In this document: in pieces, positions 10,607 to 54,038 of the stretch
Layout of the letters: the number at the start of each line of letters is the position of its first letter
How positions within the stretch are numbered: position 1 is the first letter of the stretch
Origin: Glycera tridactyla
Taxonomy: Eukaryota
NCBI GenBank assembly: GCA_965644265.1
Contig: OZ286470.1
Location: 29,264,001 to 29,328,000, forward strand
Reading direction: 5' to 3'
Length of the DNA stretch: 64,000 nucleotides
Made by a program: the position numbers and the translations under genes
Notes under the pieces: generated by a model
The model's database searches: none
What the model saw: only the letters and a program-made list of their open reading frames with translations
What the model was told of the DNA's origin: nothing

Positions 10607-10611
10607 AAGCA

Positions 10612-21310: not shown

Positions 21311-21500
21311 GGATCTATCTGTACCATTTCTCCCTCAAATTCTGCATTCCCCAGGCCGAATGCCTACTTGCGAACATAACAACAATATAAACTTTTCAAT
21401 TAGAGGATGTAACCTCCCCCCGACCTCCATTCCACCAGGTGGCTATGAATACCTAGCCACCAGAGGTCGGCCCGTCTGCTGTGTTTATCTGTGTATTTTT
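21311..21500 (+). repeat. DIRS left inverted terminal repeat (~190 bp)
   Basis: Reverse complement of 29623-29812 with about 4 mismatches. Confidence 0.9.
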
Positions 21501-22148
21501 CAACTTCGCGCCGTTGCAGCAAGTTGGGAGATACCCGGGCTCCGCGTAAAAGATACTTTTGCGTGCCTACGGCGCTTCAGAGGATACACATATTCGCATC
21601 ATATCATTCGGAATAGTATTGCTATCATTCGGAATATTGCGATTTAACCTCTGGAGTGTAATTGCGAATTTTGGTTGCCCGTAATTGTGTTATTGTACGG
21701 TACGTGTGTGGGATCACGGGGCGGACCCTCGAGGGCATCCGCCGTGCGCGGTATGTCACCGGGGCCGGAGCGGTCCGGTGTCCGTTGAATGTTGTCCAGT
21801 TTGAAACTACAATTAGGTGTCCCGGTATTATAGAGTGCGGGTGGTGTAACGGTTAGAGTTCGGGGCTTCCATCCTGGCGGCCGGGGTTCGCCTCCCCGCC
21901 TAGGAATAGTTTTGATAAGATTGCTATTGTTGTCCAAAATTTGACCGTAGTCCAATTGGAAACTACATGTTGTCCGATGTCCGGTAGCTCATCGCAATTC
22001 GCTAGTTTATCACATTTGTGTTAGTCAATAGATGTCCGGTGTCCGGTACTCATCGCTGCGGCCGGGATTTCTCTCGGCCGGTTGCACGGGAAATACAGTT
22101 TACGGGCGGCAGCGTGCAGCGCTCATCGCTAAATTCAACTGGGGAAGG

Positions 22149-22331
22149 TTCCCCGCCTAGAATTATTTTGTCGGATTGAAAATTCTTGTTTAGCCTGCAC
22201 CTTCGTAGCGTTGTCCGGATTCGTGCGTTCGCGGCATCAATAGTCGTAGCGTTGTTGGTAGCTTCCCCGCCTAGAATTATTTTGTCGGATTGAAATTCTT
22301 GTTTGGCCTCCGTCTTCGTAGCGTTGTCCGG
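22149..22331 (+). repeat. Two ~70-bp direct repeats in the DIRS 5' UTR (22149-22218, 22263-22331)
   Basis: TTCCCCGCCTAGAATTATTTTGTCGGATTGAAA...CTTCGTAGCGTTGTCCGG twice. Confidence 0.85.
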
Positions 22332-22889
22332 TGGCGAAACGGTAGCGTGCAGCGCACTCATCGCTGCGGCCGGGGTTCGATTCTCGGTCTGAATATCAAT
22401 TTTTACTCAGATTCGTAGCGTTGCTTTGTTGTTAAGTTTGACACTACCTGTCCGGTGTCCGGCGGCAACTAGATACAACAATGGTGTCTGTAGTACTACT
22501 TAACATCCCTTAGATGATATGGGGATGTATAGACCACTGATTTTTTCACTCCTCAGACAGTTCACAGTTGTTTGATTGTATTGCTTGTTGAAATGGTTCA
22601 CATTGTGGACCTGTGATTTTCATATCATTGTTTGTATTGTGGCTGAAATGACTCCTATTGAGTCGGTGTGAGCCAAAGGTTTGATGAAATGGCCGAAAGG
22701 TCTGTGATTTTCATACCCTTACCTGTCCTTGTTTGCTGTGCTGAGTGAGTTACATATATGAGCTACACATATGAGTTACACATTGATATACCCCGAGTGA
22801 ATTATACATACTGCCGGTGGACGTTCATGATTCCGTGAGTGATCCCACACTGCCAAACTATCAATTGCGTTATACTTTAATAAGTAAAT

Positions 22890-23168
22890 ATGTCTGGCCA
22901 AAAGCACGGGAATTGTGGCCACTTTATGGCGGCATGGGACAACCATGTGTTGTGCCCTTCGTGCAGAGAGTGTGGCAAGTCAGAGGACGTAGCCAAATAT
23001 GGCCAGAAAGTGTGCAATATTTGTGCTGTGTGGTCAATCGATTGCTGGGCTGCACACTATAAAAGACGGAAATTTGCGTCAAAAAAGAAGGCGACTTCTA
23101 AAAATGGCTCTTCAGTCACTTCTGAACCACCTAAAATGAAATCACTGTCAGTTGTTCTCCCGAAATAG
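22890..23168 (+). CDS. N-terminal Cys/His finger segment of the DIRS gag-like ORF, cut off by an in-frame TAG
   Basis: CGHF..NHVLCPSCRECG..VCNICAVW; same frame as 23172..25883, separated only by TAG 23166-23168 and one codon. Confidence 0.7.
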   Translation: MSGQKHGNCGHFMAAWDNHVLCPSCRECGKSEDVAKYGQKVCNICAVWSIDCWAAHYKRRKFASKKKATSKNGSSVTSEPPKMKSLSVVLPK

Positions 23169-23171
23169 TCT

Positions 23172-25883: not shown

Positions 25884-27990
25884 GGACACGAGCGTCACCC
25901 CCTCACTCCCAGTAGAGGTAGGAGCACGTCTTTTACATTTTGTCGATCAATGGGAGGAACTAACAGACAACCGTTTTGTTTTGGAGATTATCAGGGAGGG
26001 CCTCTCGTTGGCTTTTCAGGGGCAGCCGCCACTATCCCCAGTCTTTATACCCTTCACTCTCCCAAAAGGTCGGGAGAAGAGGGAGGCGCTGCTCCTCGAG
26101 ATCAGGGGGATGCTGGAGAAGCGTGCCGTTATTCCGGTGCTCCAGCATCCCGACCCAGGTCCGGGGTTTTATTGCAACCTCTTCCTGGTCTCGAAGACAA
26201 CGGGGGGTTTCCGACCAGTGATAAATCTGAAGCCTCTGAACAAATTCATTCGAAATTCCAAATTCAAAATGGAAACCTCTATGTCTGTAGTCAAGGCAGT
26301 CTCTCTCCAAGACTGGTCAGTGTCGATCGACTTAAAGGACGCTTATTTCCACATACCAATAAATCAGAGATACCAGAAATTCTTGAGATTTGCGATTTCT
26401 CCAACGGAAGCCTTCCAGTTCAGGGCTCTTCCGTTTGGTCTGAGTTCAGCTCCAAGGATTTTCACAATGGTTCTGAGGGAGGTGGCGCATCATCTTCACA
26501 GTCTAGGCATCAAAGTGCATTTTTATCTAGACGACTGGCTGTTGAGGCACCAGAGTCCAGTCGTTCTATCACAACAGTTGGACTATGTCCGAGAGCTGGC
26601 GACCAAGCTGGGCTGGATTCTGAATCTTCAAAAATCAGATCTTATTCCCAGCCAGCAATTCACTTACCTGGGTATCGAGTTCGATACCCGGGTGGGAATG
26701 GTTCGTCCAGCACTCAGGAGAGTAGAACGGCTGGAGCTCTGTGTGAGGTTATTTCTCAGGAGACCTCGACAGCCAGTCAGGGCCATATTACGTCTTCTCG
26801 GCCATATGTCGAGTATGTCAGAATTCATCCACTTGGGAAGGCTCAATATGAGACCTTTACAAATGTTCCTCCTATCCAGGTGGAGACCCTTTGCGGATTC
26901 AATGGAAATCTTGTTAACTCTTCCTCAGGAAATACTTTCAAGTCTGGAATGGTGGATGAACAGGGAGATTATCTACGGGGGCATCCCTCTAGTAGAACCG
27001 CAGGTGACTATGACGTTGATGACAGACTCTTCTTTGAAGGGTCGGGGAGCTTGTCTAGTGATGGACGACTTCAGAGCTCAGACGTCGGGAGTTTGGCCAA
27101 CCACTCATGCCGGTCGATCGATCAATGCCCTAGAGTTAGAGGCAGTTTATTTGGCCCTGAAAGATTTCTCGGATCTTCTCCAGGAACAGATAGTATTAGT
27201 TCTTTCCGACAACTCGACCACAGTGTCATATATCAGGAAACAAGGGGGGACCCACTCAGCATTAATGTGTGGGATAGCTTGGAGGATCTATCAGTTTTCA
27301 GAAGAAATCAGTGTGAGATTGAGAATCAGGCACATTCCGGGAAAACAAAATGTGTTGGCGGATGCGCTGTCCAGAGCACACCCCATCCAAACAGAATGGT
27401 CACTGAACAAGGGAGTGTTCAATCAAGTCCTAGAGAAATACAATCTCTCACCCTCCATAGACCTGATGGCGACGTCAGAAAACAGCCAGCTTCCGGTATT
27501 CATATGTCCTTTCCCCGACCCACAAGCCTTGGCAGTGGATGCCCTGTCGGTGGACTGGACACAGTTCAACATAGCCTATGTTTACCCCCCTACATCTCTC
27601 TTGCGAGATGTGATAAACAAGATAAGAGGCCTGGAGATCACACTGATTTGTGTCGCCCCATGGTGGCCGAATCAGTCGTGGTTTCCAGACCTCTTAGAAC
27701 TCTCAATAGACCAGCCCCTGGAGCTCCCTGTGTCAGTTCATTTGATGACTCAGTTGGTGAAGAAGAGGCGAGTGCATCACTTCAGGCCTCAAATAATGAA
27801 CTTGACCGCGTGGTGTTTGTCAGGGAAGCCCTCTCTAGGAAGGGTTATTCAGCAAAGGCGTCTGAGCAGATCGCTCGGTCGGTACGAAGTTCTTCAGCCA
27901 GAATCTATGACAGTAGATGGAAGAAATGGGCCTTCTGGTGTAGGAAAAAAGGGGTGGATTGTTCAGACCCCTCTACACCAGAGCTGGTAG
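25840..27990 (+). CDS. DIRS RT - RNase H - methyltransferase-like ORF (open frame from 25840; first ATG at 26110)
   Basis: DLKDAYFHIPI, LPFGLSSAPRIF, FYLDDWLL (RT); TDSS, INALELEAV, SDNSTTV, HIPGKQNVLADALSR (RNase H); IDLMAT...AYVYPP (Dam-like MT). Confidence 0.93.
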   Translation, partial: LSTSSGEKERKISPRDTSVTPSLPVEVGARLLHFVDQWEELTDNRFVLEIIREGLSLAFQGQPPLSPVFIPFTLPKGREKREALLLEIRGMLEKRAVIPVLQHPDPGPGFYCNLFLVSKTTGGFRPVINLKPLNKFIRNSKFKMETSMSVVKAVSLQDWSVSIDLKDAYFHIPINQRYQKFLRFAISPTEAFQFRALPFGLSSAPRIFTMVLREVAHHLHSLGIKVHFYLDDWLLRHQSPVVLSQQLDYVRELATKLGWILNLQKSDLIPSQQFTYLGIEFDTRVGMVRPALRRVERLELCVRLFLRRPRQPVRAILRLLGHMSSMSEFIHLGRLNMRPLQMFLLSRWRPFADSMEILLTLPQEILSSLEWWMNREIIYGGIPLVEPQVTMTLMTDSSLKGRGACLVMDDFRAQTSGVWPTTHAGRSINALELEAVYLALKDFSDLLQEQIVLVLSDNSTTVSYIRKQGGTHSALMCGIAWRIYQFSEEISVRLRIRHIPGKQNVLADALSRAHPIQTEWSLNKGVFNQVLEKYNLSPSIDLMATSENSQLPVFICPFPDPQALAVDALSVDWTQFNIAYVYPPTSLLRDVINKIRGLEITLICVAPWWPNQSWFPDLLELSIDQPLELPVSVHLMTQLVKKRRVHHFRPQIMNLTAWCLSGKPSLGRVIQQRRLSRSLGRYEVLQPESMTVDGRNGPSGVGKKGWIVQTPLHQSW

Positions 27991-28871
27991 ACTTTCTTAT
28001 TGAATTGTTCGAGTCAGGCCTTTCTCCATCTACTGTCAAAGGTTACAGAAATGCTCTACAATCGGTGTTTGTAGTCACTGGCTGCTCTGTTCTTTCTGAA
28101 AGAGAGGTGAAGTCTTTGCTGAACGACCTCTTCCTGGAGAGACCAATTCTGCAAAACGTGGTGCCACAATGGAATCTATCTATAGTGTTAGAATTTCTGA
28201 AAAGTTATGTTTTCGAACCACTGGATAGTTGTGGAATTGTAAATTTAACGCGCAAAACAGTTTTCCTCATTACTCTAGCTTCAGGTAGAAGGAGAAGTGA
28301 GGTGCATGCTTTTTCTGGTGCAGAGGGAGCTGTTAGATTTTCTGCAGATCTATCAAATGTTCGTTTATATTCAGTTCCTGGCTTCTTGGCCAAAAATCAG
28401 AATCCAGCAGCCAAGCAACCTGAAGTTCTGATTCCTGCTATCCCTGTTGTTGATAATGTACAGAATGTCTTATGCCCAGTGAGAGCGTTACATGTATATT
28501 TGCGCAGAGTTGCCCCTTTTAGGGGAAGGAGAGTTCGACTGTTCTTGCCGCCAAATAAATCTACGAAAAAGGAAATAAGGGTTGACAGAGTTTCATCCTG
28601 GATCCAGCAGGTGGTGAGAATGTCTTATGAGCATGCAGATAGAGAGTCTGAATTGCCAGAGTCTATTACAGCTCATGAAACCAGAGCAATTTCCACATCG
28701 TGGAAATCATTTAATCAGAGTTGCTCTGTTGAAGACCTCATGAAGGCAGCTTTTTGGAAATCTGGCTCAACTTTTCCCACATTCTATTTACGTGATATGT
28801 GTGGACAGGCTCTCGACCTTTATTCTCTGGGGCCTGTGGTTGTAGCACAGTCAGTAGTAAATCCACGTTAG
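25950..28871 (+). CDS. DIRS tyrosine recombinase ORF (long N-terminal part overlaps the RT ORF)
   Basis: SGRRRSEV (Arg), HETR (HxxR), FWKS..TFPTFY (Trp/Tyr) catalytic residues; preceding helical binding domain YDSRWKKW..WC..STVKGYRNAL. Confidence 0.92.
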   Translation: MGGTNRQPFCFGDYQGGPLVGFSGAAATIPSLYTLHSPKRSGEEGGAAPRDQGDAGEACRYSGAPASRPRSGVLLQPLPGLEDNGGFPTSDKSEASEQIHSKFQIQNGNLYVCSQGSLSPRLVSVDRLKGRLFPHTNKSEIPEILEICDFSNGSLPVQGSSVWSEFSSKDFHNGSEGGGASSSQSRHQSAFLSRRLAVEAPESSRSITTVGLCPRAGDQAGLDSESSKIRSYSQPAIHLPGYRVRYPGGNGSSSTQESRTAGALCEVISQETSTASQGHITSSRPYVEYVRIHPLGKAQYETFTNVPPIQVETLCGFNGNLVNSSSGNTFKSGMVDEQGDYLRGHPSSRTAGDYDVDDRLFFEGSGSLSSDGRLQSSDVGSLANHSCRSIDQCPRVRGSLFGPERFLGSSPGTDSISSFRQLDHSVIYQETRGDPLSINVWDSLEDLSVFRRNQCEIENQAHSGKTKCVGGCAVQSTPHPNRMVTEQGSVQSSPREIQSLTLHRPDGDVRKQPASGIHMSFPRPTSLGSGCPVGGLDTVQHSLCLPPYISLARCDKQDKRPGDHTDLCRPMVAESVVVSRPLRTLNRPAPGAPCVSSFDDSVGEEEASASLQASNNELDRVVFVREALSRKGYSAKASEQIARSVRSSSARIYDSRWKKWAFWCRKKGVDCSDPSTPELVDFLIELFESGLSPSTVKGYRNALQSVFVVTGCSVLSEREVKSLLNDLFLERPILQNVVPQWNLSIVLEFLKSYVFEPLDSCGIVNLTRKTVFLITLASGRRRSEVHAFSGAEGAVRFSADLSNVRLYSVPGFLAKNQNPAAKQPEVLIPAIPVVDNVQNVLCPVRALHVYLRRVAPFRGRRVRLFLPPNKSTKKEIRVDRVSSWIQQVVRMSYEHADRESELPESITAHETRAISTSWKSFNQSCSVEDLMKAAFWKSGSTFPTFYLRDMCGQALDLYSLGPVVVAQSVVNPR

Positions 28872-29043
28872 GAGTCAGTGGATAGTTTTACTAGTCAAAT
28901 TAAGAATCGGGTTGATTCTATTTCTTATATTTATTAGGTCTTCACGGTGAGAGAAAGAGTAAGCTCTGAAACTATACAATAGTTGTAGATATTATAATAC
29001 ATGGATTGGAGACGTTACTCAGGGAAGTATACGATCCGTCCAT

Positions 29044-29432
29044 GAGACATGGAGTCTTTACTCTGGGTCTATAAATTATGTATAAAGAATACTCAGGTTT
29101 GAGTGCATTACCTATACAGGTATATAACCTTCCTGAGAGACATGGAGCTACTACTCTAGGTCTCTAATATTATTCATATACAAATACTCGGGTTTGAGTG
29201 CATTACCTAGGCAGGTATATAACCTTCCCGAGAGACATGGAGATACTACTCTGGGTCTATAATATTTATAATATACAAATACTCGGGTTTGAGTGCATTA
29301 CCTAGGCAGGTATATAACCTTCCCGAGAGACATGGAGCTACTACTCTGGGTCTATGATATTGTTAATATACAAATACTCGGGTTTGAGTGCATTACCTAG
29401 GCAGGTATATAACCTTCCCGAGAGACATGGAG
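29044..29432 (+). repeat. ~95-bp tandem repeat, 4 copies plus partial, in the DIRS 3' UTR
   Basis: GAGACATGGAG starts at 29044, 29137, 29232, 29327 and 29422. Confidence 0.92.
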
Positions 29433-29475
29433 TTTTTTGCTAGGGGGCTCTACACCCACCATCCATGTCAGATTC

Positions 29476-29569
29476 ATGCAGAATTTGAGGGAGAAATGGT
29501 ACAGATAGATCCCCCCCAGGTTTGTTTATTTAACCTGGGGATCTATACTTACCATTTCTCCCTCAAATT
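29476..29569 (+). repeat. DIRS internal complementary region (ICR)
   Basis: First half is the reverse complement of the left terminus (21311 onward); second half is the reverse complement of the right terminus (to 29843). Confidence 0.93.
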
Positions 29570-29622
29570 GGATGTTCCCTCCCGTCCGTCCCCGCTGTAG
29601 AGCGTTGGCGCTTGTTGAAGTA

Positions 29623-29843
29623 AAAAATACACAGATAAACACAGCAGACGGGCCGACCTCTGATGGCTAGGTATTCATAGCCACCTGGTGGAATGGAGGT
29701 CGGGGGGAGGTTACATCCTCTAATTGAAAAGTTTATATTGTTGTTATGTTCGCAAGTAGGCATTCGGCCTGGGGAATGCAGAATTTGAGGGAGAAATGGT
29801 AAGTATAGATCCCCAGGTTAAATAAACAAACCTGGGGGGATCT
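29623..29843 (+). repeat. DIRS right ITR (29623-29812) plus right extension (29813-29843)
   Basis: Complementary to the left ITR; extension CCAGGTTAAATAAACAAACCTGGGGGGATCT matches the ICR. Confidence 0.9.
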
Positions 29844-33848: not shown

Positions 33849-36800
33849 TTACTATCATCACTGTCGTTATTATTACTGTTATATTACTAGTACTGCAGTG
33901 AAGTAGACCTGGTGATGAAAAATGTATGCGAAGTAGGAGAAAGAAATGTCCATATGTTGGGTCATGTTACTGTTACTAACCCCCTCTACCTGGCGAATGG
34001 ACCAGTGGTGATCACCACGCAACCAAGTTTTGAGTGGGGACTTTGTATACCAGCGTAAATGAAGATATGTCCATTATTATACCAACACTAGTCAAGGGTC
34101 AACTCGCAGCTTCACCGATTTTGCCCGCTAACAGAGAAGGCTCAGCCGTTCAGCTTCCTTTTACATATTTTCTCAGCTTTTCCCGAATTTTCTCAATTCA
34201 CCCTCTCTTATTTGTGCCTACAAGTAGATATGGATACTTTTTCAACTCATATCTCCTCAATGTATATCTGACGTGATTGGTTTTCTCAAGAAGACCATAG
34301 GAATAGAAAGTACTGACACGAAGTCGCGACAGTGGATTCTGCAAATAAACTAGGCATCAAATCTGACTGTCCGACATGGATGCCAATAGTGCTTGGAACC
34401 TGGATGATTTAGGGGAGGCGGGGAGGGGGGCTTCACATTTAGAATGACAAGTCAAATGCACCTAGTAGTACCTCAGATAAAGTGGCAGGTCTTCACAAAT
34501 ACGCCATTCCATACTGTCAAACCTCTCACATGGTAATAATATTTGCTGGCCTAGAGATTGAATAATGTATGCGGCATCGGGTAATTGATAGTCAATGGGG
34601 TACCGACTAACATTCACAGTGTGCTACAGGGACCTTTTTATAGTCCTGCCATTTGTCATATAGTTGATTGGGTTCACCCACACGGTTCCATGGGAGGTAC
34701 AGATGATGATACATTCTCACATCGCATCCTGATCTAACTGTACATTTCAAATTCTATTGGTATTCACAGACCCGTGACTGGTTGTCGTGGCAACAAAATT
34801 TGGTTAAACCATGATTTTATTCCACCAAGGCCTGGTGCACTTCCAATACAGCATCAGTTTGTCCATATTTGGTATTGATATATACGTCTCATCAAGCCTG
34901 ACAATATGACATTGGCACGATTGTCAGTTAGGTGATATATCTCTCGTAGAATCTGCTCATGTGGTGCAAAGAGATAAATTCAAGATTGAATTTCATACTT
35001 GAATTGTATTTCATAATATCCGAGGCCAAATTAAAAATTGTGCCAATAGAGTGATCGAGTGTAGTGATTGATGAATTGATTGGCAAATAATCTGACCCTC
35101 TGTAACATGAATTTGTGTTGCGCTAGTCCGAAATAACCTGAAATCGAATTGAGCACTGATCTTCATCTAAACAAAGAACAAGCAGACAAAAATCTTTGGA
35201 GTAACATCACGAAAAGCATGCATAAACAAAATTCGACCTTGTGCCCACTTGCCCGCATTGAAATTTCAGATTGGCTTGTGATAGCTTGTGTGAATGATAT
35301 ACTTTGATGAGGAACTGTGATGATATTGGTAGTTTTCGTCAGTGTCTAAGTTCTTGTGAGCCTGATAAATTGAGGTTGTGGCAGAAGTGAAGGAGCCTTG
35401 GCAATTATTCATCATAAATCACACAAAAATGATTGAGTATCCATCAGGCCTGACAGGTAATCAGTTGCCTTGAACTGTCCCTTCTACCTTATATATTCCG
35501 ATTGATGCGCTGACAATATGAAACAAATGACAAATATTCGATTGTCTGATGCAGAATCACTGACAACACTAGGATCGCTCACAATGTAAGGTGCTGAGGT
35601 GTTGAGACATTGTCTCTCAGGAAATATTTTATATTAAATGGGTATGACTTTTTGCAGGTCAGACATTCCTATCCCAGCCCCACCAACCAACCTATCTGGT
35701 CACTCTGATGTGGGTAAAAACAGTTTATTTTGCCAATATGAAGCTAATGACATATATTCAAGCGTCTCAAGTCAGGGCCTAATGCAGAATCACCAGGATC
35801 GCTTACCATATAGGATGTTCAGGTGTGGAAACTTTGCCTGTCAGAGAACTGTACATTACATGGGTGTGAATTTTTGCAGGTTAGACTTTCATATTCCAGC
35901 CCCGCCACCCAACCTTTTTCGGTCACTATAATGTTGGTTTTATTGCTTGTATTGATTGATCCGGTTTCAGTTGCATCAGGGTTTACCATCGGTCATCGAC
36001 CATAGTCATCGGACTACCACAGTACATGCCTGCCCACCAACTTCCAGCTCTATTCAATTCAAAATGAATATGCAAAGGGATGCACGAGGGCCAGGGCCAT
36101 TGGGCAAGCGGAGGAATGACCACGTCAGGAATGACTGTGGTGAAAAATCGTTCCCACAACAATGACTCAGTGGACTACGAAAAGTCTATCTTCACTCCAT
36201 GGCGCAGGACTGCTTATTGAACCTAGCCCTTAAAGGGCGTAGGTCGATAGAGATCCTGTGCCACTCCTTGGCGCCAGTGCTAACATACCTGACCCGGATT
36301 GAAGAACCCACCCGTTAGCACTGGACAACCACTCAGTCATTGTTGAACTTTTCGAAAACTGAAGAAACCTGCCCGGTTATCTGCTTTATGTAGTCTATGC
36401 TAGCACTGGCGCCAAGGAGTGGCGTAAGAGTACAAATAGGTCTGGGCGGTGAGTACTGATAGGTCTGGGCAGTGCTCGAATGTCAAATATGGTTTCCGTA
36501 GTTTCTTTGACATGAGTGACAATTATGGTCTGTCTTGATATAGCTTCAGTATGTACAGCTCATGCTCACTGATTGATATGCAGTCATTCTCAGTCAAATA
36601 ATCCCTTTTCAGAACAAAGTGTTGAGTGATCGGCATAAGGGGAAGCTGGATGAAAAACCATATTCTTCCAGGGCCCATCATACATCAATGCATTCAACTC
36701 ATTTTCAATTGATGCATGATTGGTTTTCGATGTCCATGGCATTGAAAAATTCACCCTTATGCAATTGCGCAGTCAGCACATCGTAAATCGAGGACTTGTT

Positions 36801-37043
36801 TACCCAGTGCATGCTGTTTAGGAAACAGAGCCTGGCCGTGTGTATGTGTCTGTGCTACATGCACGTGACAGAACCACCTAATTATCTCTAATTTTTTTTC
36901 GATCGAGTATTGATTTCTCACACATAACTTCATCAGTGATCCCATGGTACAATAGAATGTAAGTCTGAAATGGCCCATGTGGTGTCGAGAGGATGTTAAG
37001 AAATACTCAATCAATCAATCGATCAATCAATCAATCAAAAGCA

Positions 37044-37317
37044 CCCTTCATCATCTAGCTGTATGAAATCACATCCACTCTCATGCACTATCCACTGAAG
37101 AATATTCTGATTCACCGGTCACCATTATTTGACTGCCAAGCAAGTACGCTTCGACATGTCCGTGGAAAACTGGAATGTGCTACAATCTGTCACCATGAAG
37201 ATATCAAAGCGTCATCGACCTCCTCCTACAGTGATAACAAAAGATGTCGATGTTCATCACAGCCCCTGCTTGAAGAAGATTCTGAGGGTCAGAGCCGATA
37301 CAGTGCATATGTTCTTG
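37044..37317 (+). pseudogene. Degenerate PAN/WSC-like exon paralogue (unit A')
   Basis: Counterpart of 10612-10885 with the same TAG and deletions. Confidence 0.7.
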
Positions 37318-38316
37318 GATATTGCTCATCATGTTGTACTTCTGATGAAAATTTAGACACCAGGATTCGAAGAGAATCTACTGAAATGGTTCTGATCATA
37401 TCTTCCTGAAATTCATCAGAAATCTGAAGTCAGATCCAGGTCAGCAAGAATGACTGATCGAATGGATATTGTGAGATCCAAAGTGTAGGTGCTGGTGAGT
37501 ATCTGATTTACAGACTGAATCAGGATGAATGAATTGTCTTCCCATCAATAGAAATAAAAAAACCCTGTTCCCCTTAACGCTAACAGCAAATTCCAAATCC
37601 AGGTAAGCTCATCCAATCACTCCAGAACATACCATAAATGGTAACTGGGCTTTTCCCTGTAATTGCATACGGTGCTACTTCGGTGGATCAAGTTATTTCT
37701 ATATCAGTCATCCACAGGAAGATAAAAAAATGGCATGATTGGTGTGTTAACTTCAGATTTTTTCTCGACAAGTAAGTGAAGTCCGCACTAGATATTTGAA
37801 TAGTGGATTGAGATGTGTTGAGACACAAATATAGCCATGGATGAAAAATAGGTTGCATATATCAATTTATTTCCCACCAAAGAATATATGACAAGGACTC
37901 CTTTCTTTCTAATTTTGAGATATGTATACAGTAACTTTTAAGGCATCTGTGGTATGAAGCTGATGAATTCATCACTGTGTCGCTTGGAACAAATGTGGAT
38001 TTCTATAGTTTCCTATGACTTGAGTGGCAACTATGGTCTGTCATCTTAGTATGGCTTTTGTATGCAGTCACGTTTGGTACAATATACCATACTTGAATGA
38101 TATGTTGTGTGGCCAGCATCAGGGAAAGCTGGAAGAGATGAGATTATTTTTCCAGCAGTCATCGGGACCTGCATTGGTTATGCATCAGTGCATTCAACGC
38201 ATATTCGAGTGATGTATGATCGGTTTTCACCGGCTTTGTCTAGGGCATTGAATTATGCATCCTTACCCAAAACTGCAGGCGGCACACTGTAAACCTGTAT
38301 CTATTGCCTCACAAAG

Positions 38317-38638
38317 ATGTCGGCATTGTACAGTGCAGCAGCCTCCATCATCTGGCTGTATGAAATCATATCCCATTGTTATGCGTTATCCACTGGAGCA
38401 TATTCTAAGTCAATTGACCGGTCACCAATTTTTGACTTCCAAGCAAGTACGGTTCATTATGTCCGTGGAATCCTGGAATGTGCTACAATCTGTCACCATG
38501 AAGATAACCAAACATCATCAACCTTCTTCTACAGCGATAACAAAAGATGTCGATGTTCAGCACATTCTCCGATTGGAGAAGATTCTGATATCCGAAGCCT
38601 TTACAGTGCATATGTTCCTACCCAACCTGATAAACCTG
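38317..38638 (+). CDS. Exon 1 of secreted PAN/WSC-like + LamG lectin-like protein
   Basis: ATG, signal-like leader, ECATIC...RCRC, CCTG|GTGAGT donor at 38639; 322 nt, phase 1. Confidence 0.72.
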
Positions 38639-39737
38639 GTGAGTCCATATTCATATATCAGATTATGCCATATTCGAGCCATATATCGTCTTTCCTCAAC
38701 ATGACTAAAATATTCGATATTGATAATCATGAGCCATGATAGCAATGACATGCCAATCTTTCCCAAGTTGAACATCCATGCCATTCATCCATCCCACTCA
38801 TCCTGGATAATACATGGTCAGGGTCTGAAAAATGTTATGTTACAGAAACATATTCATAAAGCTCTGAAATCCAGTCAAACTGAATAAATCAGCTAGAATT
38901 GGCTGTATTAAGTCACATCTTATTGTCATGCATTATCCACAGAAGAATATTCGCAAGTCCACTTAATGCAATTCACACTAATACAGCCGTGGATCACAAA
39001 AAACAAGTATACATTCAAAGGTTGTAGCTGCCATTAGACATCACATTGATTGATTATTATTATATGAATATAGTCAAGTGGCACACCTTCATTTTGACCA
39101 GTCTCATGGCTTGGTTAGTTTATTCATAGTTGCCATGGTAACCATAGACACAACAGATTTGCACCTGGAATGATATATTCGCCGCTGGTGCAACCTATTC
39201 ATGGTATATGGATGCAAATGTTTTGCGATTGATTGTATTGTCATCTTGTCTGAGTAATGCAGCATGAAGGGGAATCAGGTATCAATCATAGCTACCAGAA
39301 AATCTCACTTCAAACATGGAAATTGTAGCAAAAAAAAAAAAAAATTCAGTGGGGTTATTTCTCACAAGAGAGTACAGATCAAATTCCCTTGAAACAGTTG
39401 CAGAAAGTCAATGTATGTTTACTGCAATGATTGCGAACAAAATCACCTAGCATGGCAGGGAGCATAATGGTTACTTAGCATCCCTTTATAGACCATGCTA
39501 CCAAGTTCCTAGTTACTCTGCTGGATAGGACAGAAAAGAAAACTAGATTGGCCCTCTGCTGTTTTCATCCATTTACAGTTTGATTAAAATTCAGCACGGA
39601 AAGATACTATAGCTAATCAGTTAAGGGAGATCCAAGACATGAGCAATCCCAGAATAACTGATATAGGATTCACATTTTTCCATCATCCATGGAGAATAAC
39701 TTTTGAGTTTCGATCTCTTCTGTTTTGTAGGGACCTG

Positions 39738-39805
39738 CCTTGGTGGCTCAGTGGTAGCATGCTGGGCCGGCATGCAATGGGTCTGGGGTTCAACCCTTCA
39801 TCCTT
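39738..39805 (+). mobile_element. tRNA-derived SINE head fragment (intronic)
   Basis: Box A TGGCTCAGTGG 39744-39754 and box B GGTTCAACCC 39787-39796 at tRNA-like spacing; no complete cloverleaf. Confidence 0.5.
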
Positions 39806-39889
39806 GGCAGGTGGTCTGATTTAGCCTATCCAAGTGCAGAAAGTGGATGTAAAACCTCACCATTTCATTTCTTTTTTTCTGTTTTGTAG

Positions 39890-40515
39890 ATCTGTGGTTT
39901 CCATTCGAATGTGTTTTGGACGGATTGATTCTCGGCCCAATCAATGGCACTCTCATATCTGGTGCTAATCTGGTGAGAGATGGTGACAGAAGAGTCCTCC
40001 AGACAAGAGATAATACTGAATACATCGACTTCGGTGACCAGAGACACATTTGTTTTGGTAACCTGGACCACTGCCCGAATGGATTCACACTTGCAATCTG
40101 GCTGAAGACAGTGAATCAAACACGCACACGGTACTTCATCACTAGTGGGGCGCATGCTTTGGACTCTCATGGCATAGCATTGAGTAAAAGATCTCTTGAA
40201 TTAATAATGAAATTCAAAACTTCAACAGGTCAATATTGGGAGGCAAAAAGTTCTACTGACATTCAAGCGAACACATGGTATCATGTGGTGATGACATGGA
40301 GTCCCTCGGGAGCCAGGTTGTATGCAAATGGAGAAGAGATCGCGCAGGACAACACTGCAACGTCGAAAAATGCGGCTAATATCCGAACACATTTCGTTAT
40401 GGGCAGACAGAATAAAGCGGTAGCTTCAACTCGCTACTCTGCGCAGGCTTGGTATGATGACATGCGAGTTTATCATGAAGAAAAGCAAGAAGACTTCATC
40501 AGAAACTTATATTAG
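39890..40515 (+). CDS. Exon 2 (terminal): LamG-3/ConA-like lectin domain
   Basis: Polypyrimidine tract and TTGTAG acceptor at 39888-39889; the leading AT completes G|AT; LWFPFE, CFGNLDHCPNGFTLAIWLK, WYHVVMTW, LYANG, DDMRVY; TAG 40513-40515. Confidence 0.82.
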
Positions 40516-41969
40516 TTCTTAGACTGCTCTGGTCCGACTCATAATGTTGCCATTGACATTTCGATCATTTGTGGAGAATATGCAACATTTATAAGTATTT
40601 GTCTGATTTGCTTTTACAGAGAATGAGCAGTTCATCTTAGAACAAAAACGTCCAAACTAGGAATTTGGAAAAGAAGAAGTGAAGAAAGAAAATGGTCATA
40701 GATTATTTCACGATTATGGTATTGTTGTAATGATATCTATGAGAGGTCGTCCTCAGCGATTATCCTTGTATTGGCATCCCAGTATGACACATAGGAGACT
40801 GGCATGATGTCGGAAAAGAAGTGATGGCCAACCTACCGAAAAAAGATCTAAACCACCGGTCAAAGGCTATCCTGAGACTGCTAGGACATGTCCGGCATGT
40901 CAGCTTCCAAACATTTTGGGTGATTTCATATGTCATGATAAGGTGTCCCCCCCCCCTCTCAGGGGACACATTTTGCAAACATTCCAAAAGTCCTACCATC
41001 TGTTTCAAGATATATTCGACCAACCACACATTGGTATTCTGGTGAGACAAAGTCAATCTGAGGTAACAGTGATCATTCATGCCTTTCTACCGCGCTTGGT
41101 GCTCATCCTGAGAGTGGAGAGTGGAGGTCAGCTGTCCAAACACTGGGCGCCATGAGTAGTTCCAGGTTTAGAAGCACAATTATATTTCTAGCAATTCCAT
41201 GTCAAAAATATATATTCATATCATCCGTTGGCTCTAACCAACCATTATCAATTATCTTATCATCCCTTGCAGTGCAGAGAATCATATTCGAATGGGGCCA
41301 TTAAGTGAAAGCAGAAAATTGATTAACTGCATCACTTGTGGGGAATGTGGCCTCCAAAATGTTGGCCGAACAGGCTGAACTTGACATGAATGATTTGGCA
41401 ATCATCCGAATCAAGTTCTAGCCAAGGATTCAACTGAAGATGTGTGCAGACATTACACCACATCTGGACATAAAAGCCTAACGGATATGAAAATCACCGT
41501 TTCGGGATCTATTTTTGTGTCCCCCCCTGAAGGGACTGATCGCTATATCCCTGAGATAACATATAAAATTTGATTGGATTCAGTGGCCAAGAACGATGCT
41601 CCCTGGACTCAACACGAAGGACCACACTCTTCCTACAGTAGATAAAAGAAGTTGCGCGGGATGCACTGAGATAGACACAAAAATTATACGAATAGATCTG
41701 TCACTTATATTTGGATGTGACAGATACGTTCCATTTGGTTGCATCGTGACTCCAGTAAAAGAATGCATGCTATGTAGTGTTCATTAAAAAGTGCTGCTAC
41801 CTCGTTAGGTCTATCCTCACGACTCAATAACTCCAACTCGATAATTCCCGGAGTAGTATGGCTGATCATCACTTTTAATGTGCCATTTCGTGGTGATTCC
41901 ATGATTAGAACACCAGCTCAGATTCATTACCCAGCAGTAGTAGTAGTAGTAGTAGTAGTAGTGATTTCT

Positions 41970-42326
41970 TTTTTTTCAGCCTCCCCCTGGCGGCCGCAGG
42001 CCGCCGTCGAGCGCGTAGCGCTCGTCGGCGGCTGCAGGCCGCCTGGGGAGGCTGTTTGTGTTCACCAATCCGCCATCTTGGAAAGATTTGACAGGTCCCC
42101 ACCACACCAAATGAATGGTTGCCTGTACTGCAGGCGATGGGGTACCAGTCAGTCTTCTTGGCAACGGTTGGCGCGCGTAGCGCGGCTTGTAGCAGTTGGC
42201 GCGCGTAGCGCAGCCACTACCATAGAGGTTGGCGCGCTGTAGTGTCGTCAAAGAACGGTATTTAAGTTCTTTGGTGTCGTGTCGGGGGGAGGCATTTTTG
42301 GGCGGTCTCAACCGCAGGTTCTTGTT
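41970..42326 (-). mobile_element. Helentron-associated-like non-autonomous element (HINE-like), ~357 bp, GC-rich
   Basis: Absent from units A and A'; sits in a T run without TSD; minus strand starts AACAAGAACC; subterminal IRs GCCTCCCCC/GGGGGAGGC; 78-nt hairpin 41977-42054 next to the terminal A run. Confidence 0.6.
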
Positions 42327-42958
42327 AGTTCGTCATACAATCACATATCCAATATATAGTATGACGTAATATGTACAGTAATACAATTGCATATGTGATA
42401 AAGCTTTTACCCTCAAAAGGAGGATTTTCTCAAGCCGACGAAAGATAAGACTTTCTTGTTCGTTACAAGTGATACTGATGAAGGAATGAATAAAGATATG
42501 AGAGTGATGGGAAGACAGAAAACAGAAACTATGACAGAGACACTGCGGACATACTAGTAATATGCAAGAGCAAACAGTAATGAAACAGAACTAAAAGATG
42601 TATAAACTGAGGACCAATTAGGAACAAATTAGGTACTGATTGGGTACCAAGATTGGCGTTGAAACATAACTAACAGCTATGTGAGACCCAGTCAGAGACG
42701 ATAATGAGATTCGAAGTGCTTTCAAATACAATTATATCCGGGTCGGGGACATAGTTCTGATCAATGATCTCTAATTGGAAGCGAAGCCTCATGCACCAGG
42801 TGTAAGAGGCAGGATAAACAGCAGCAATGCCCACAGGCGACAGGTTAGTGAGTGCAAGCAAAGGATTGAAATAAGGAATATCTCGATGAAATTATTTGTT
42901 TTTTATGTTTGACCATGTCTTATATAGGAGTAGATGGAAATATGATACAAATATACGA

Positions 42959-47670: not shown

Positions 47671-50600
47671 TTACTATCATCACTGTCGTTATTATTACTG
47701 TTATATTACTAGTACTGCAGTGAAGTAGACCTGGTGATGAAAAATGTATGCAAAGTAGGAGAAAGAAATGTCCATATGTTGGGTCATGTTACTGTTACTA
47801 ACCCCCTCTACCTGGCGAATGGACCAGTGGTGATCACCACGCAACCAAGTTTTGAGTGGGGACTTTGTATACCAGCGTAAATGAAGATATGTCCATTATT
47901 ATACCAACACTAGTCAAGGGTCAACTCGCAGCTTCACCGATTTTGCCCACTAACAGAGAAGGCTCAGCCGTTCAGCTTCCTTTTACATATTTTCTCAGCT
48001 TTTTCCGAATTTTCTCAATTCACCCTCTCTTATTTGTGCCTACAAGTAGATATGGATACTTTTTCAACTCGTATCTCCTCAATGGATATCTAACGTGATC
48101 TGTTTTCTCAAGAAGACCATAGGAAGAGAAAGTACTGACACGAAGTCATGACAGTGGATTCTGCAAATAAACTAGGCATCAAATCTGACTGTCCGACATG
48201 GATGCCAATAGTGCTTGGAACCTGAATGATTCAAGGGAGGCGGGGGGAGGGGGGGCTTCACATTTAGAATGACAAGTCGAATGCAGCTAGTAGTACCTTA
48301 AATAAAGTGGACAGGTCTTCACAAATACGCCATTCCCCACTGTCAAACCTCTCACATGGCAATAATATCTGCTGGCGTAGAGATTGAATAATGTATGCGG
48401 CATCGGGTAATTGATAGTCAATAGTGTACCGACTAACATTCACGGTGTGCTACAGGGACCTTTTTATAGTCCTGCCATTCGTCATATAGTTGATTGGGTT
48501 CACCCACAATGTTCCATGGGAGGTACAGATGATGATACATTCTTACATCACATCCTGATCTGACTGTACATTTCAAATTCTATTGGTAGTCACAGACCCG
48601 TGACTGGTTGTCGTGGCAACAAAATTCGGTTAAACCATGATTTTATTCCACCAAGGCCTGGTGCACTTCCAATACAGCATCAGTTCGTCCATATTTGGTA
48701 TTGATATATACGTCTCATCAAGCCTGACAATATGACATTTGCACAATTGTCAGTTAGGTGATATATCTCTCGTAGAATCTGCTCATGTGGTGCAAAGAGA
48801 TAAATTCAAGGTTGAATTTCATACTTGAATTGTATTTCATAATTTCCGAGGCCAAATGAAAAATTGTGCCAATAGAGTGATCGAGTGTAGTGATTAATGA
48901 ATTGATTGGCAAATAATCTGACCCTCTGTAACATGAATTTGTGTTGCGCTAGTCCAAAATGACCTGAAATCGAATTGAGCACTTATCTTCATCTAAACCA
49001 AGAACAAGCAGATAAAAAGCTTTGAAGTAACATCACGAAAAGCATGCATAAACAAAATCCGACCGTGTGCCCACTTGCCCGCATTGAAATTTCAGATTGG
49101 CTTGTAATAGCTCGTGTGAATGATATACTTTGATGAGGAACTGCGATGATATTGGTAGTTTTCATCAATGTCTAAGTTCTTGTGAGCCTGATAAATTGAG
49201 GTTGTGGCAGAAGTCAAGGAGCCTGGGCAATTATTCATCATAAATCACACAAAAATGATTGAGTATCCATCAGCCCTGACAGGTAATTAGTTGCCTTGAG
49301 ATGTCCCTTCCACCTCACATACTGATATTTGTCAGGGTTCTCTAAAGGCAATATATTCCGATCAATGCGCTGACAATATGAAACAAATGACAAATATTCG
49401 ATTGTCTGATGCAGAATCACTGACAACACCAGGATCGCTTACAATGTAAGGTGCTGAGGTGTTGAGACATTGTCTCTCAGGAAATATTTTATATTAAATG
49501 GCTATGACTTTTTGCAGGTCAGACATTCCTATCCCAGCCCACCAACCAACCTATCTGGTCACTCTGATGTGGGTAAAACCAGTTTATTCTGCCAATATGA
49601 AGCTAATGACATATATTTGAGCGTCTCAAGTCAGGGCCTAATGCAGAATCACCAGGATCGCTTACCATATAGGATGTTCAGGTGTGGAGACTTTGCCTGT
49701 CAGAGAACTGTACATTACATGATTGTGAATTTTTGCAGGTTAGACTTTCATATTCCAGCCCCCGCCAACCAACCATTTTCGGTCACTATAATGTTGGTTT
49801 TAGTGCTTGTATTGATCGATCCGGTTTCAGTTGCATCAGGGTCTACCATCGTTCATCGACCATAGTCATCGGACTACCACATTAGAATGCCTGCCAACAA
49901 CTTCCAGCTCCATTCAATTCAAAATGAATATGCAAAGGGATGCACGAGGGCCAGGGCCATCGGGCAAGCGGGGGAATGACCACGTCAGGAATGACTGTGG
50001 TGAAAAATCGTTCCCACAACAATGACTCAGTGGACTACGAAAAGTCTATCTTCACTCCATGGCGCAGGACTGGTTATTGAACCTAGCTCCTAAAGGGCGT
50101 AGGTCGATAGAGATCCTGTGCCACTCCTTGGCGCCAGTGCTAAAATACCTGACCCGGATTGAAGAACCCACCCGTTAGCACTGGACAACCACTCAGTCAT
50201 TGTTGAACTTTTCGAAAACTGACGAAACCTGCCCAGTTATCCGCTTTATGTAGTCTATGCTAGCACTGGCGCCAAGGAGTGGCGTAAGAGTACAAATAGG
50301 TCTGGGTGGTGAGTACTGATAGGTCTGGGCAGTGCTCGAAGGTCAAATATGGTTTCCGTAGTTTCTTTGACATTAGTGGCAATTATGGTCTGTCTTGATA
50401 TAGCTTCAGTATGTACAGCTCATGCTCACTGATTGATATGCAGTCATGCTCAGTCAAATAATCCCTTTTCAGAACAAAGTGTTGAGTGATCAGCATAGTT
50501 GAATTGCAAAATGGCTGATAACTAACACGGACATTAACCACGCTCATCGGAACTTAATGGATATCTCCCTACATGGAATGATCTAAGCCATAAAATCGAA

Positions 50601-50714
50601 GGTACTGTTTATTAATGATGATGTGATCCTATTGGCATGAAAGCGGGAGAATTACTAATAGTATAGAGCATAGTATAAGAACAGAAACTTTTTGAGCGAA
50701 AAAAGGCAAGGTCG

Positions 50715-52750
50715 ATGGACAGCAGTATGGCGACACCCCTGACCTCGGCCACACAGCGCAGGAAATACGATGCTATGAGTACAGTTGATAACGAATTCGA
50801 ATTAGAGGATAAGCGTTTGAAAGAAAAACCGGTGACACCCCCATCGAATTGTGAATTAACGTACGATACTATAGAGGATAGTATTGTGAATTTTGATGGG
50901 AGTGAAGCGAGTGCAATGTCAACTCAAGAAAACTACGAGAAACTGACAACAGAAAGCATGTCGATAGAGGATTCTAGCCATATTGGATCTCTTGCGGTCA
51001 CCAGTGACGAGGATACGTTATATAATGAGTCAACCGATAGCGAAAGCGGCAAGGAAGCGGCTGGAGTAAATGACCTCACAGAACAACTAGCAACCAGGCG
51101 TGAAGACCATAATAAACACGCAGTCGAGGACACACCTTTAATCTGCCAAGAATCTGAGGCGGACTTAGAGGTGAACATTGTAGAAGTCAATAGGCAGTTG
51201 GTGAAAGACTTAAAAGGAGTAGCAAATACAATCGATCAAAAAAGGTCCTTAGAAGATTACCGGCAAGAAGTGCCAGTCCCAGTGACAAAAGGAAAAATCG
51301 ATGAAAAAAGGCGAGAACAGACCTGCGTGATCAGTAGGTCAGAATTAAAGAAGATGATAGACGATCGTGTAAAAATAGCAATTGCAGATACAATAATCCC
51401 AGCCGGTACAGAACGTAATGACCTGGAATCAATTACAGGGCAATATATGAATAGACATGCTAAATCTTACATTGAGGACAACTTAAAAGGCCAGTTCGAG
51501 CAATTTGAAAGGATAAATAGGATGGCTATGTATGCCTATGTTGAGGATTCAGTGCAGGGATCGATGCAGCAGTGCAAGGAGGATTTGTTGAAAAAAACAG
51601 CAGCAAATTGTTGATACGGTGGAAGACCAACAAGTACAGATGAAAACACTTGAAAAGAGGCTAACTGACGTGTCACTGGACATCAGACAAGATCTTGACC
51701 AATTGAAGGCAGAAAATATGATTCCACAGACAAGTGACTATAATGACAGTACCATAAAGCAGGATATTCTGGAATTACGGAAAGACATCATGGATATGGC
51801 CGAGGTGATTGGAGATCATGACTATAGAATTGATAGAGGGGAAGTCAATGTAGACACACTGCAGAAAATCGAGAGGCTGAGTGTGGTAGTACTTGATGGG
51901 CTGCCTGTTGTGAGAGACAAAACACTACATGAACAAGTCATATATTTCATAGATCCGAAGAAGGGACTGAAACTGACAGTACATGATGTGTGTCAAGTCA
52001 TGAGATACGGTCCTACCTATGAAGACAAACCAAGATCAATTAAGATTAGATTCTGTAACCCAGACAATAGACGTCTTGTACTGAAACTGAAACAAAAACT
52101 AAGGGGTACAAAATTTTTTCTATGTGAGCATTTAACACCGTGGGAAAGTGATCTGTTTTCAAAGGCAAAAGAGGCAAAAAAGAAGGGAGAATTGACACAA
52201 GTGTGGACACAGGATGGGAGGGTGTGCGTATCTCATGGGAGGGACAAAACTAGATATTACATAAATAATGAAAAATCACTCTTTGAGGCAATAAAGAAAA
52301 AAGGGGGAGGAGGTGATGATAAGGAAGATAAAAACCTGACTACAGGTATTGGGGGATGTCCAGAAAACGACACCAGACATGAATGCTCCCAGTGTGATAT
52401 CATCATTGACTACCTCGCCGGGGACGGTCCCCTCACCTAAACCGTTGAAGGACGTAGATGGAACTGAAGCAAAATTACCTCCTGGTCATGATTCGAACAT
52501 CATGGCACAAGGAGATACTGTGGATAAACTGAAGAATACGTCAATGAAATTGCAAGATATTAGACAACTTATGAAATCGAAAGAATCAAAATTTTTCGGA
52601 AGTAGATTATCGAAACCGGATGAGGGCAGATTGAATGATTTCCCTCCGTTGGGAGGACAAAGTAAAACACGCCCGTATAGCGGTCATAGGAAACAGTTGA
52701 CACAACGCGGTAACAAATCGAACAGTGCGAGAGGAGGGAGAACCAAATAG
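50715..52750 (+). pseudogene. LINE ORF1 (acidic N-terminus, coiled coil, RRM/CTD of L1-ORF1p type) split by two frameshifts
   Basis: VVLDGLP..DVCQVMRYG..PRSIKIRF..KLRGTKFFLCEHLT..VWTQDGRV; pieces 50715..51614, 51619..52440 and 52349..52750 join at A and G runs. Confidence 0.8.
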
Positions 52751-53153
52751 CGGCCATTTGTAACTTCATGTGGCGACTTCTTCTACAGTTAATATTCGTT
52801 ATTATGACTTCGCAATCGTCCTATATTGCTCAGTGGAGATGGAATGATGCCCAACTTGGCTTCAAGAATGAGGTGAGTTGAAATACTAGCTGAAATAATT
52901 CGGTATGATGTAATCGGCAGTATACTTCATGACGCTCCACGTGAAACTAGAATCGTAGTATGTTCATTCAAGTAAGACCACCTCGGACAACCAGTGTAGC
53001 GCGCTCAGTCGAATAAGACTGTGTCTTCACTTGAAAAATATATTATAATTGCCCACGTGTTTTTGATGAAATTTACTGCATATAAAGATTTATCCCCTCT
53101 CATACTGCAGAAATGTACTGAAATGAATAAAAAGTAATCACATACATGTCTGT

Positions 53154-54038
53154 TTGAAGTGGAAACCTGAATTGGCGAAGAGAATTGCAGAAGATCGAGT
53201 TGAATTGAATGAAGAAACTTGTCCGGTACACAGACGACGAAATTTGGTTGATACATACGGTACCCCGGATGTAATAGTCATGGGGAGCAGTCATGTCTGG
53301 AGGTTGGGGAAATTCATTAGATCAACCCTAGACCCAAATTCAAGACTCAAAACTGTATTGAATACTGAATTTCGTGGGATAAGTGGTGGATCATGGGAAA
53401 ATTTTGTGGGAGAGATTCAGGGAGATTTCAAGAACACAAGGCAGGGCTTGAAGAAAAAAAGACTGTACGGCAACAAGCTACGAGACTTGAAAGAAAACTA
53501 TGTCTATCCAAATTATATTATATTCGTACTGGGCTCAAACGATGTGGACAGACTGAATACGAGGATCAAATCTTTGACATATAAGATCAGGGATCTCGGG
53601 GTGAGAAACAGACTGATCTGAGAGGCCAGAAATGAGGAATTCGTGAAAATCACAGGTGTAATAAACAGAACACAGATGTTCATAAGAAGTCATTACCCAT
53701 TGTGCACTTTCTTCCATATACCAATATTCTGGAGACCAGGTTGGTGTGATGATACACGCATGTTGGCACTATGGGTAGACAATTATCTAAGAAGACACAT
53801 CATGCATCGTACAAGATCTATCCACACACAATGTCTCTTTGTGAAACAGCACAAGACACCTTCAAGAGTTGGGCGACTCGGCACAGCTAGAAAACAACGA
53901 AAAAGAGCATGGAACCATGGGGACCTACTAATGGGAATGCTGTACTCAGATCATGTTCATTTGAATGACTTGGGTCATATGGGTGTATGTATCTCGGTTA
54001 CAGGACAGATTTTTGATGATTGGTATACGCCAGAATGA
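53154..54038 (+). pseudogene. SGNH/GDSL hydrolase (esterase) ORF with one in-frame TGA (53619-53621)
   Basis: Block I VIVMGSSHV, block II GISGG, block III LGSND, block V DHVHLNDLG; 53154..53621 and 53643..54038 share a frame. Confidence 0.8.

Follow-up and report, generated by a model that had tools for sequence, protein, structure and literature searches.

Does the forward strand of this Glycera tridactyla DNA (contig OZ286470.1, a stretch of 64,000 nucleotides that we refer to as the window) carry a hidden gene at 38317-40515, and if so, what kind of protein does it encode? A sequence-only reading had joined two open blocks there, through an aspartate codon split by an intron, into an uninterrupted protein of 315 residues. 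We conclude, with a probability of roughly 72%, that a genuine gene of two coding exons occupies 38317-40515, and that its product, about 315 residues long, would start with a signal-like N-terminus, continue with a divergent, disulfide-locked PAN/apple-type module and then a Laminin_G_3 module, and lack a membrane anchor. The gene is of an ordinary kind, and its modules are of known kinds. The coding part of exon 1 (38317-38638, + strand) starts with an ATG and continues for 107 codons without a stop (38317-38637), and the G at 38638 opens the split codon. The intron (38639-39889, + strand; 1251 nt, phase 1) runs from GTGAGT to TTTTGTAG, with a polypyrimidine tract and then TAG at its 3' end. 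In exon 2 (39890-40515, + strand), the AT at 39890-39891 completes the codon GAT for Asp, 39892-40512 provides 207 further codons, and the reading frame closes with TAG at 40513-40515. The coordinates, the frames, the GT-AG intron and the residues at the junction, all as proposed earlier, thus proved exact. All searches and all folding were performed exon by exon, and the total of 315 codons was obtained by arithmetic (107 + 1 + 207).

The evidence for splicing came from comparison with paralogs and from estimates of selection. We performed six-frame and profile searches of the organism's own 2.04-Gb assembly and paired the matching exons by position. Every close match to exon 1 had a match to exon 2 downstream on the same strand, in seven units on the window's own contig (C31) and at loci on C39, C26 and, several times, C17. 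Paralogs were 44-64% identical in amino acids to the window gene in exon 1 and 58-67% in exon 2. In the diverged paralogs (C39, C17, C26) the donor (CCN G, then GT(A/G/C)AGT) and the acceptor (TTTT(G/A)(C/T)AG, then AT CTG TGG TT) were kept, the phase and the position of the start were the same, and the stop fell within 3 codons; in most copies CACAAAG preceded the ATG. The paralog introns, 637-1554 nt in length, could otherwise not be aligned.

We compared 36001-42500 with five paralog loci using tblastx and found that the two exons were the only conserved coding blocks, accompanied by a conserved short non-coding block upstream of the ATG. This confinement of coding conservation to the two exons speaks against further coding exons nearby, and it bears on the possibility that both are part of a larger gene, for example a multi-domain receptor or matrix protein with more coding exons. 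Such LamG_3 modules do also occur inside very large proteins, such as an adhesion G-protein-coupled receptor (GPCR)-like protein of Acanthaster (P0002) and an astacin of a tube anemone. Here, however, paralogs with a synonymous divergence (dS) of up to ~1 show the stop, and the ATG that opens the signal-like leader, at unchanged positions; no other conserved coding block was seen within ~2 kb upstream, in the intron or ~0.7-2 kb downstream; and the neighbouring units of the array lie at least 13.8 kb away, each with a start of its own. We therefore consider a larger gene very unlikely.

The 5' flank (38117-38316, + strand) contains non-coding blocks (~38160-38270, and CACAAAG just before the ATG) that are kept in paralogs on other chromosomes. 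We observed that blocks within 38160-38316 are common to the paralogs on C39 and C17, for instance ..ATGCATCAGTGCATTCAAC.CATATTC.. and the CACAAAG before the ATG. This region could be a promoter or a 5' untranslated region (5'UTR), and a short 5'UTR intron (GTGAT ... AAAG, then ATG) is conceivable. The intron between the two coding exons contains a tRNA-like stretch at 39722-39800 (..GGTGGCTCAGTGGTAGCA...GGTTCAACCC..) that resembles the head of a tRNA-derived short interspersed nuclear element (SINE); ARAGORN called no tRNA in the intron, and no Rfam family was found in 36000-42000.

To measure selection, we calculated pairwise ratios of nonsynonymous to synonymous divergence (dN/dS) by the Nei-Gojobori method, exon by exon and with bootstrap 95% intervals, between the window gene and the loci L036, L037 and L040. 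For exon 1 the ratios were 0.41, 0.52 and 0.41, respectively (dS 0.57-1.15), and for exon 2 they were 0.36, 0.26 and 0.29 (dS 0.60-1.05); the bootstrap intervals were below 1 for both exons. A dead relic of exon 1, which we call e1' (37035-37313, + strand), lies ~1.28 kb upstream of exon 1 in most units of the C31 array and has a second copy in the window at 10603-10881. Its 5' end is cut by a (CAAT)n run at 37010-37040, it contains an in-frame TAG and it has no donor. This relic shares 59% protein identity with the live exon 1, at a dN/dS of 1.25 (confidence interval 0.79-2.43) and a dS of 0.24. Since e1' has evolved neutrally and the live exons have ratios below 1, the live exons are constrained as coding sequence; the dS of 0.24 also places the origin of the relic after the C39 paralog had split off. 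We rejected e1' as an alternative first exon because it is truncated, carries the in-frame TAG, has no donor and has evolved neutrally.

Two other explanations of the open blocks were rejected as well. Chance open reading frames (ORFs) do not account for an exon pair that is conserved in paralogs with dN/dS below 1, and a transposon-borne gene is at odds with paralogs that sit in unrelated flanks, where the exons and the short 5' block alone are conserved.

The second exon is the more readily classified of the two. It opens with the lead-in D-L-W-F-P-F-E-C, followed by an N-glycosylation sequon at residue 18, a GDQRHICFGNLDHCPNGFTLAIWLK block and a Laminin_G_3 module at residues 48-199. The Pfam model Laminin_G_3 (PF13385) matched the exon with 69.9 bits against a cut-off of 27.6 (E = 3.6e-19), over profile positions 2-146 of 151, in agreement with the LamG-3 domain that had been named from the sequence. 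The language-model atlas score was 0.98, and all atlas matches belonged to Laminin_G_3 clusters. A profile search of the PDB with six family members found 4qvs, an S-layer domain of LamG_3 type (E = 7e-6), and 3flp, a Limulus SAP-like pentraxin (E = 0.0034); the Pfam model Pentaxin (PF00354) had no match in exon 2 at E <= 1. From these profile matches we predict a concanavalin A (ConA)-like or pentraxin-like jelly-roll fold for exon 2.

An exhaustive profile search with exon 2 returned 11,263 proteins at E <= 0.001, with a single close relative among them: P0001, an ORF of 230 residues on a 1382-nt NCBI contig (365 bits, 52% identity). P0001 was also the only protein found by a word search with this exon. 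The first 19 residues of P0001 resemble a read-through of the pyrimidine tract and acceptor; if so, P0001 would represent this exon in a different species, where the call missed the first exon. LamG_3 modules in large proteins came next, namely those of the Acanthaster (sea star) protein P0002 and the tube-anemone astacin mentioned above, together with modules from a freshwater mussel, from the annelid Owenia and from the nemertean Lineus, where the proteins are small or partial. Exon 2 shares the block G-x-Q-R-H-x-C-[FL]-G-N-L-x-x-C-x-x-G-[FW]-T..W-L with LamG_3 modules of nemertean, annelid, bivalve, echinoderm and cnidarian proteins. By Pfam score and by this cysteine block, exon 2 thus resembles the Laminin_G_3/pentraxin-like modules of metazoan extracellular proteins. 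Unlike the giant multi-LamG, EGF, GPCR and astacin architectures that make up most of the database matches, it forms one module behind a PAN-like module in a small two-exon gene.

The part of exon 1 beyond the leader (38386-38638, + strand) encodes the module that we read as divergent PAN/apple-like, and ends in Pro followed by the G that opens the split Asp codon. It contains the motifs on which the sequence-only reading had based a module described as PAN-like with a WSC-like end: C-x3-C at residues 55/59, FFY at 70-72 and C-x-C at 78/80. We searched Pfam with ten family members (the window exon and nine paralogous or sister exons) and found no PAN model above threshold; the best signal in the family was that of the L046 exon, from a subfamily at 42.8 Mb on C17, to PAN_1 (15.4 bits against a cut-off of 21.4, E = 0.017). 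WSC (PF01822) had no match at E <= 1 for window exon 1 and none at E <= 10 for the nine other family members. A word search with exon 1 found no relatives, and a PDB profile search gave nothing significant, the best plausible entry being 6ryv (E = 0.65) in the N-terminal part of its chain, which we take to be a PAN domain. The language-model atlas scored exon 1 at 0.95 with 183 shared features, and PAN_1 clusters made up 29 of its 30 matches.

We modelled the mature part of exon 1 with AlphaFold2 (AF2) from 14 family sequences, replacing an earlier model of poor quality that had included the signal peptide and used 8 sequences (predicted local distance difference test, pLDDT, 56). The new model reached a pLDDT of 61 (core 66-79) and a predicted template modelling score (pTM) of 0.51. 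Its topology is beta-beta-alpha-beta-beta-beta, with strands at 6-8 and 23-25, a helix at 29-39 and strands at 46-50, 54-58 and 73-78; the helix carries C-x3-C, and the hairpin carries FFY and C-x-C. Structure prediction followed by Foldseek, a check that had been suggested together with the gene model, returned about 50 best rows that were all of PAN/apple fold, headed by 2yio (probability 0.94, template modelling score 0.54, E = 0.13). Entries included SML-2, the HGF N domain, a copper-oxidase N-terminal domain, AMA1, MIC4, plasminogen, an Eimeria PAN module and saratin. The VIA wide search, which is independent of Foldseek, placed plasminogen residues 1-85 (PAN) first at Z 7.0, with the HGF N domain at 6.1-6.4 and SML-2 at 6.2; lower in rank were the WSC domain of Wsc1 (5.7), MIC4 apple-5 (5.4) and the WSC domain of Kremen (4.1). 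This list also contained leech anti-platelet protein, kallikrein and factor XI apple domains and MANEC, and about 23 of its 25 best rows were PAN/apple or WSC.

These results lead us to suggest, with modest confidence, that the exon-1 module is PAN/apple-like in its predicted fold; by the Pfam criterion it is not a PAN member. Could it instead be of WSC type, or an unrelated small disulfide domain that shares the helix-on-hairpin arrangement? The failure of all ten family members to reach a PAN threshold would fit such a module, as would the modest confidence of the AF2 model and the closeness of the WSC domains of Wsc1 and Kremen, which score only ~1-3 Z units from the PAN matches. Likewise, an hhalign comparison of the exon-1 family profile with the PAN-like region of a Lineus protein described below gave E = 0.47 over just 15 columns. 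Yet PAN/apple entries stand at the top of both structural searches, above WSC, and dominate the atlas matches; the family's Pfam signals are to PAN_1 and PAN_3 and never to WSC; the distances between C-x3-C, the aromatic-x-aromatic motif and the C after it agree with the PAN core; and the canonical fourth cysteine is still present in a sister subfamily. A WSC-type or unrelated module is accordingly doubtful. The PAN-like half of the earlier description is thus supported, at modest confidence, by the predicted fold, but the WSC half is not: WSC would be a structural cousin of this PAN/apple-like module, lower in rank and without sequence support.

The cysteines were compared with the PAN core, in which C1 pairs with C6, C2 with C5 and C3 with C4. 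Across 14 aligned family modules four cysteines are invariant, those of C-x3-C and C-x-C, and these include C2, C3 (C2-x3-C3) and C5. C4 is not present in the window subfamily and is present in the subfamily at 42.8 Mb on C17 (..ETCPGFTY..). The absence of a usual cysteine, which had been noticed from the window alone, therefore holds for the window subfamily but is not family-wide, and the window copy has in addition lost the first PAN cysteine. Cysteine 7 of exon 2 (39910-39912) occurs in every subfamily with a PAN-like exon, and for this reason we infer that it is PAN C6, the partner of C1, so that the outer disulfide would have spanned the exon junction in the ancestral protein. On this reading the PAN-type module probably extends ~8 residues into exon 2.

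Compared with the PAN/apple domains (PF00024 and its clan, including the N-terminal domains of plasminogen and HGF, the apples of factor XI and prekallikrein, SML-2 and MIC4), the module would share the helix-on-sheet core, the C-x3-C helix and a hairpin with two aromatics and a cysteine. It differs from them in that the window module falls below the Pfam thresholds, is without the canonical fourth cysteine and has an extra cysteine two residues past the fifth (C-x-C); moreover, the window copy is without the first cysteine, and the probable sixth is encoded in the next exon.

The start codon opens a signal-peptide-like N-terminus of 23 residues (38317-38385, + strand) that ends in ..H-C-Y-A before L-S-T-G. 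Small residues occupy positions -3 and -1 before the conserved L-S-T-G, and the first AF2 model placed a helix at residues 3-27. The signal-like hydrophobic core is strong in paralog L040 (3.23). No stretch of 19 residues in either exon is hydrophobic enough for a membrane span (best means 1.29 in exon 1 and 1.34 in exon 2), as had been noted when no transmembrane segment was seen. After removal of the predicted signal, the paralogs have 8 cysteines and the window protein has 7, which suggests that one cysteine of this copy is unpaired. An N-glycosylation sequon at residue 18 of exon 2 was found in all 6 of the intact paralogs compared. A signal-like N-terminus, an even number of cysteines in the paralogs and the conserved sequon make it plausible that the protein is secreted via the secretory pathway.

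The window gene belongs to a tandem array of seven units at C31:29.262-29.436 Mb (~175 kb), with a basic period of ~13.8 kb. Both exons are open in four units (A, C, D and G), and three units (B, E and F) are broken. Unit A (L031, + strand) starts outside the window, at C31:29262006, and only the 3' tail of its exon 2 falls inside, at 1-276. Unit B (+ strand) has an exon 1 at 11889-12209 with 95% amino-acid identity to that of the window gene, and its exon 2 is deleted: a 6.0-kb insert without an ORF of at least 150 residues occupies the intron just after the exon-1 donor (12227-18225), and a deletion of 1573 nt, equal to 39159-40731 and with its junction at 18733, took out the exon. Unit C is the window gene (38317-40515, + strand). 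The remaining units lie beyond the window: D is open in both exons, E has a frameshift in exon 1, F has a frameshift in exon 2 and an intron of 5.9 kb, and G is open in both exons with an intron of 8 kb. Exon 2 of units A and D carries an insertion of two residues, Ala-Pro, that the window copy (207 codons) does not have. The spacing of 26.4 kb between units B and C is due to the 6.0-kb insert and to an 8.5-kb insertion at 21316-29838, which was seen as a gap in the self-alignment. The sequence-only reading had spoken of a gene amplified in a fast-turnover tandem array; this is a fair label, with three of seven units broken over 175 kb, but just one complete gene lies inside the window. We also observed two direct copies in the window, at 48581-54029 and 58552-64000, which are 5449 nt long, 99.98% identical and 10 kb apart in their starts. 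They overlap a region that had been read as resembling a long interspersed nuclear element (LINE), and represent either a very recent duplication or an assembly duplication.

Several observations weigh against the gene and protein proposed here. Window exon 1 matched no Pfam family at E <= 1, no structural match of its module was individually significant (Foldseek E >= 0.13, VIA Z < 8) and confidence in the model was moderate. The hydrophobic core of the signal-like segment is weak in the window copy, with a Kyte-Doolittle mean of 1.74 over 9 residues and a Glu at 16. No canonical AATAAA was found on the + strand from the stop to 42489. The case for splicing is comparative, for this copy and for all others. 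Where paralogs have the first PAN cysteine (Cys 42 in L037), ~14 residues before C-x3-C, residue 42 of the window protein (38440-38442) is Phe; most array neighbours also have Phe there, and unit G retains the cysteine. Given the lost cysteine and the three broken units, the window copy could be drifting.

The last two points lead to another explanation, in which the family is real and what looks intact in the window is a pseudogene, a duplicate that is young, silent or in decay within a birth-and-death array. Array copies differ by a pairwise dS of merely 0.03-0.075, which leaves too little time for stops to appear in a dead copy, and the first PAN cysteine, lost from the window copy and its closest neighbours, is kept in out-paralogs as well as in unit G. 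On the other side, no damage is seen in the window copy at either exon, either splice site, the start or the stop; paralogs on other chromosomes share its conserved 5' flank; and dN/dS within the array is below 1 in all pairs (0.14-0.54), a range that is built on few changes. We regard a decaying duplicate as unlikely, and continue to read 38317-40515 as most likely a real two-exon gene.

How widespread is this gene structure in the genome? The exon-2 product had at least 123 LamG_3 exon matches in the assembly, and the exon-1 product matched 24 places in the six-frame search, with at least 38 PAN-like exon matches when profiles were used. We found at least 25 pairs in which a PAN-like exon lies upstream of a LamG exon on the same strand and within 10 kb (on C31, C17, C26, C39, C28 and C13), and about 19 of these have no stop in either part. 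Sister subfamilies form arrays of their own on both strands at C17:42.84-42.91, C28:13.39-13.55 and C13:55.34-55.40 Mb (L024, L027-L030, L044-L047). Their LamG exons are 28-39% identical to exon 2, and the exon with the cysteine module lies 0.6-5.7 kb upstream, mostly ~1-4 kb. In all six sister loci examined, the cysteine-module exon ends in a Pro codon and then G followed by GT, at the same phase-1 position. The following exons in the family start with D-L-[WY]-F-x-[FM]-E-C, with the sister form D-L-Y-F-x-M-E-C. By sequence matching, the LamG_3 exon family as a whole is much larger than the 25 counted pairs.

Clusters of further single-exon LamG_3 matches were observed at C18:5.45-5.63, C42:49.0-49.2 and 78.3-78.4, C28:55.5-55.9 and C31:67.60-67.65 Mb, and on C47, C32 and C34. 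These exons are 21-31% identical to exon 2 and are mostly open frames of 205-290 residues; at one C18 locus (L048), the upstream exon was a weak match only.

Outside this genome, the closest design that we found is LOC135484853 of the nemertean Lineus longissimus (XP_064622616.1, 354 residues), a predicted RefSeq model that combines a signal peptide and a PAN-like module (sub-threshold for PAN_1 and PAN_3) with a C-terminal Laminin_G_3 that has the same cysteine block. It differs in having an extra EGF-like, cysteine-rich spacer, and its LamG is distant, scoring 94.9 bits to the profile against 365 for P0001. The Lineus protein is uncharacterised and hence gives no pointer to function. A literature search for the combination of PAN and Laminin_G_3 found no paper describing it. 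Among mollusc shell proteins, a 'matrix protein-1' with ChtBD2 and Laminin_G_3 is known from mussel shell proteomes (PMC6641155), and Argonauta has a homologue of the nautilus-shell 'LamininG3' (PMC9635632). These shell-matrix proteins are likewise secreted-type invertebrate carriers of Laminin_G_3, though with chitin-binding or other partners rather than PAN. Their likeness to the window protein is one of domain family alone, and they lend no support to a biomineral role here.

PAN/apple modules in Sarcocystis SML-2 and in Toxoplasma MIC4 recognise sugars of galactose type, heparin is a ligand of the HGF N domain, and jelly rolls of LamG/pentraxin type bind ligands on one sheet edge. By analogy, the protein would work extracellularly, with one or both of its two modules binding glycans or proteins, and would serve as a soluble recognition component or as a component of matrix or mucus. 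The family would evolve by birth and death in tandem arrays; such arrays are typical of recognition proteins and of matrix or mucus proteins, without telling which. Immune, mucus, matrix and biomineral roles are not told apart by these data. More speculatively, the PAN-like plus LamG_3 genes (25 or more loci, arrayed on six chromosome-scale contigs) might form a lineage-specific, fast-turnover repertoire of secreted two-module lectin-like receptors for the recognition of non-self or surface glycans in a spiralian, in which the loss of C1 in the C31 array would leave a free thiol for disulfide dimers or for tethering to matrix or mucus; we consider this improbable as it stands.

If the gene model is true, the annotation of this genome should gain at least 25 small two-exon genes. 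Pipelines based on ORFs or on homology can miss such genes or halve them, as illustrated by P0001, an ORF that runs through the acceptor and is without the first exon. The family would also provide an example of a divergent PAN/apple module that goes undetected by Pfam and whose outer disulfide probably bridges an exon junction, and would add another combination of PAN with a lectin-type module. It opens no long-standing question; its value would lie in annotation and in the candidates that it offers for expression and glycan-binding work on invertebrate recognition or matrix proteins.

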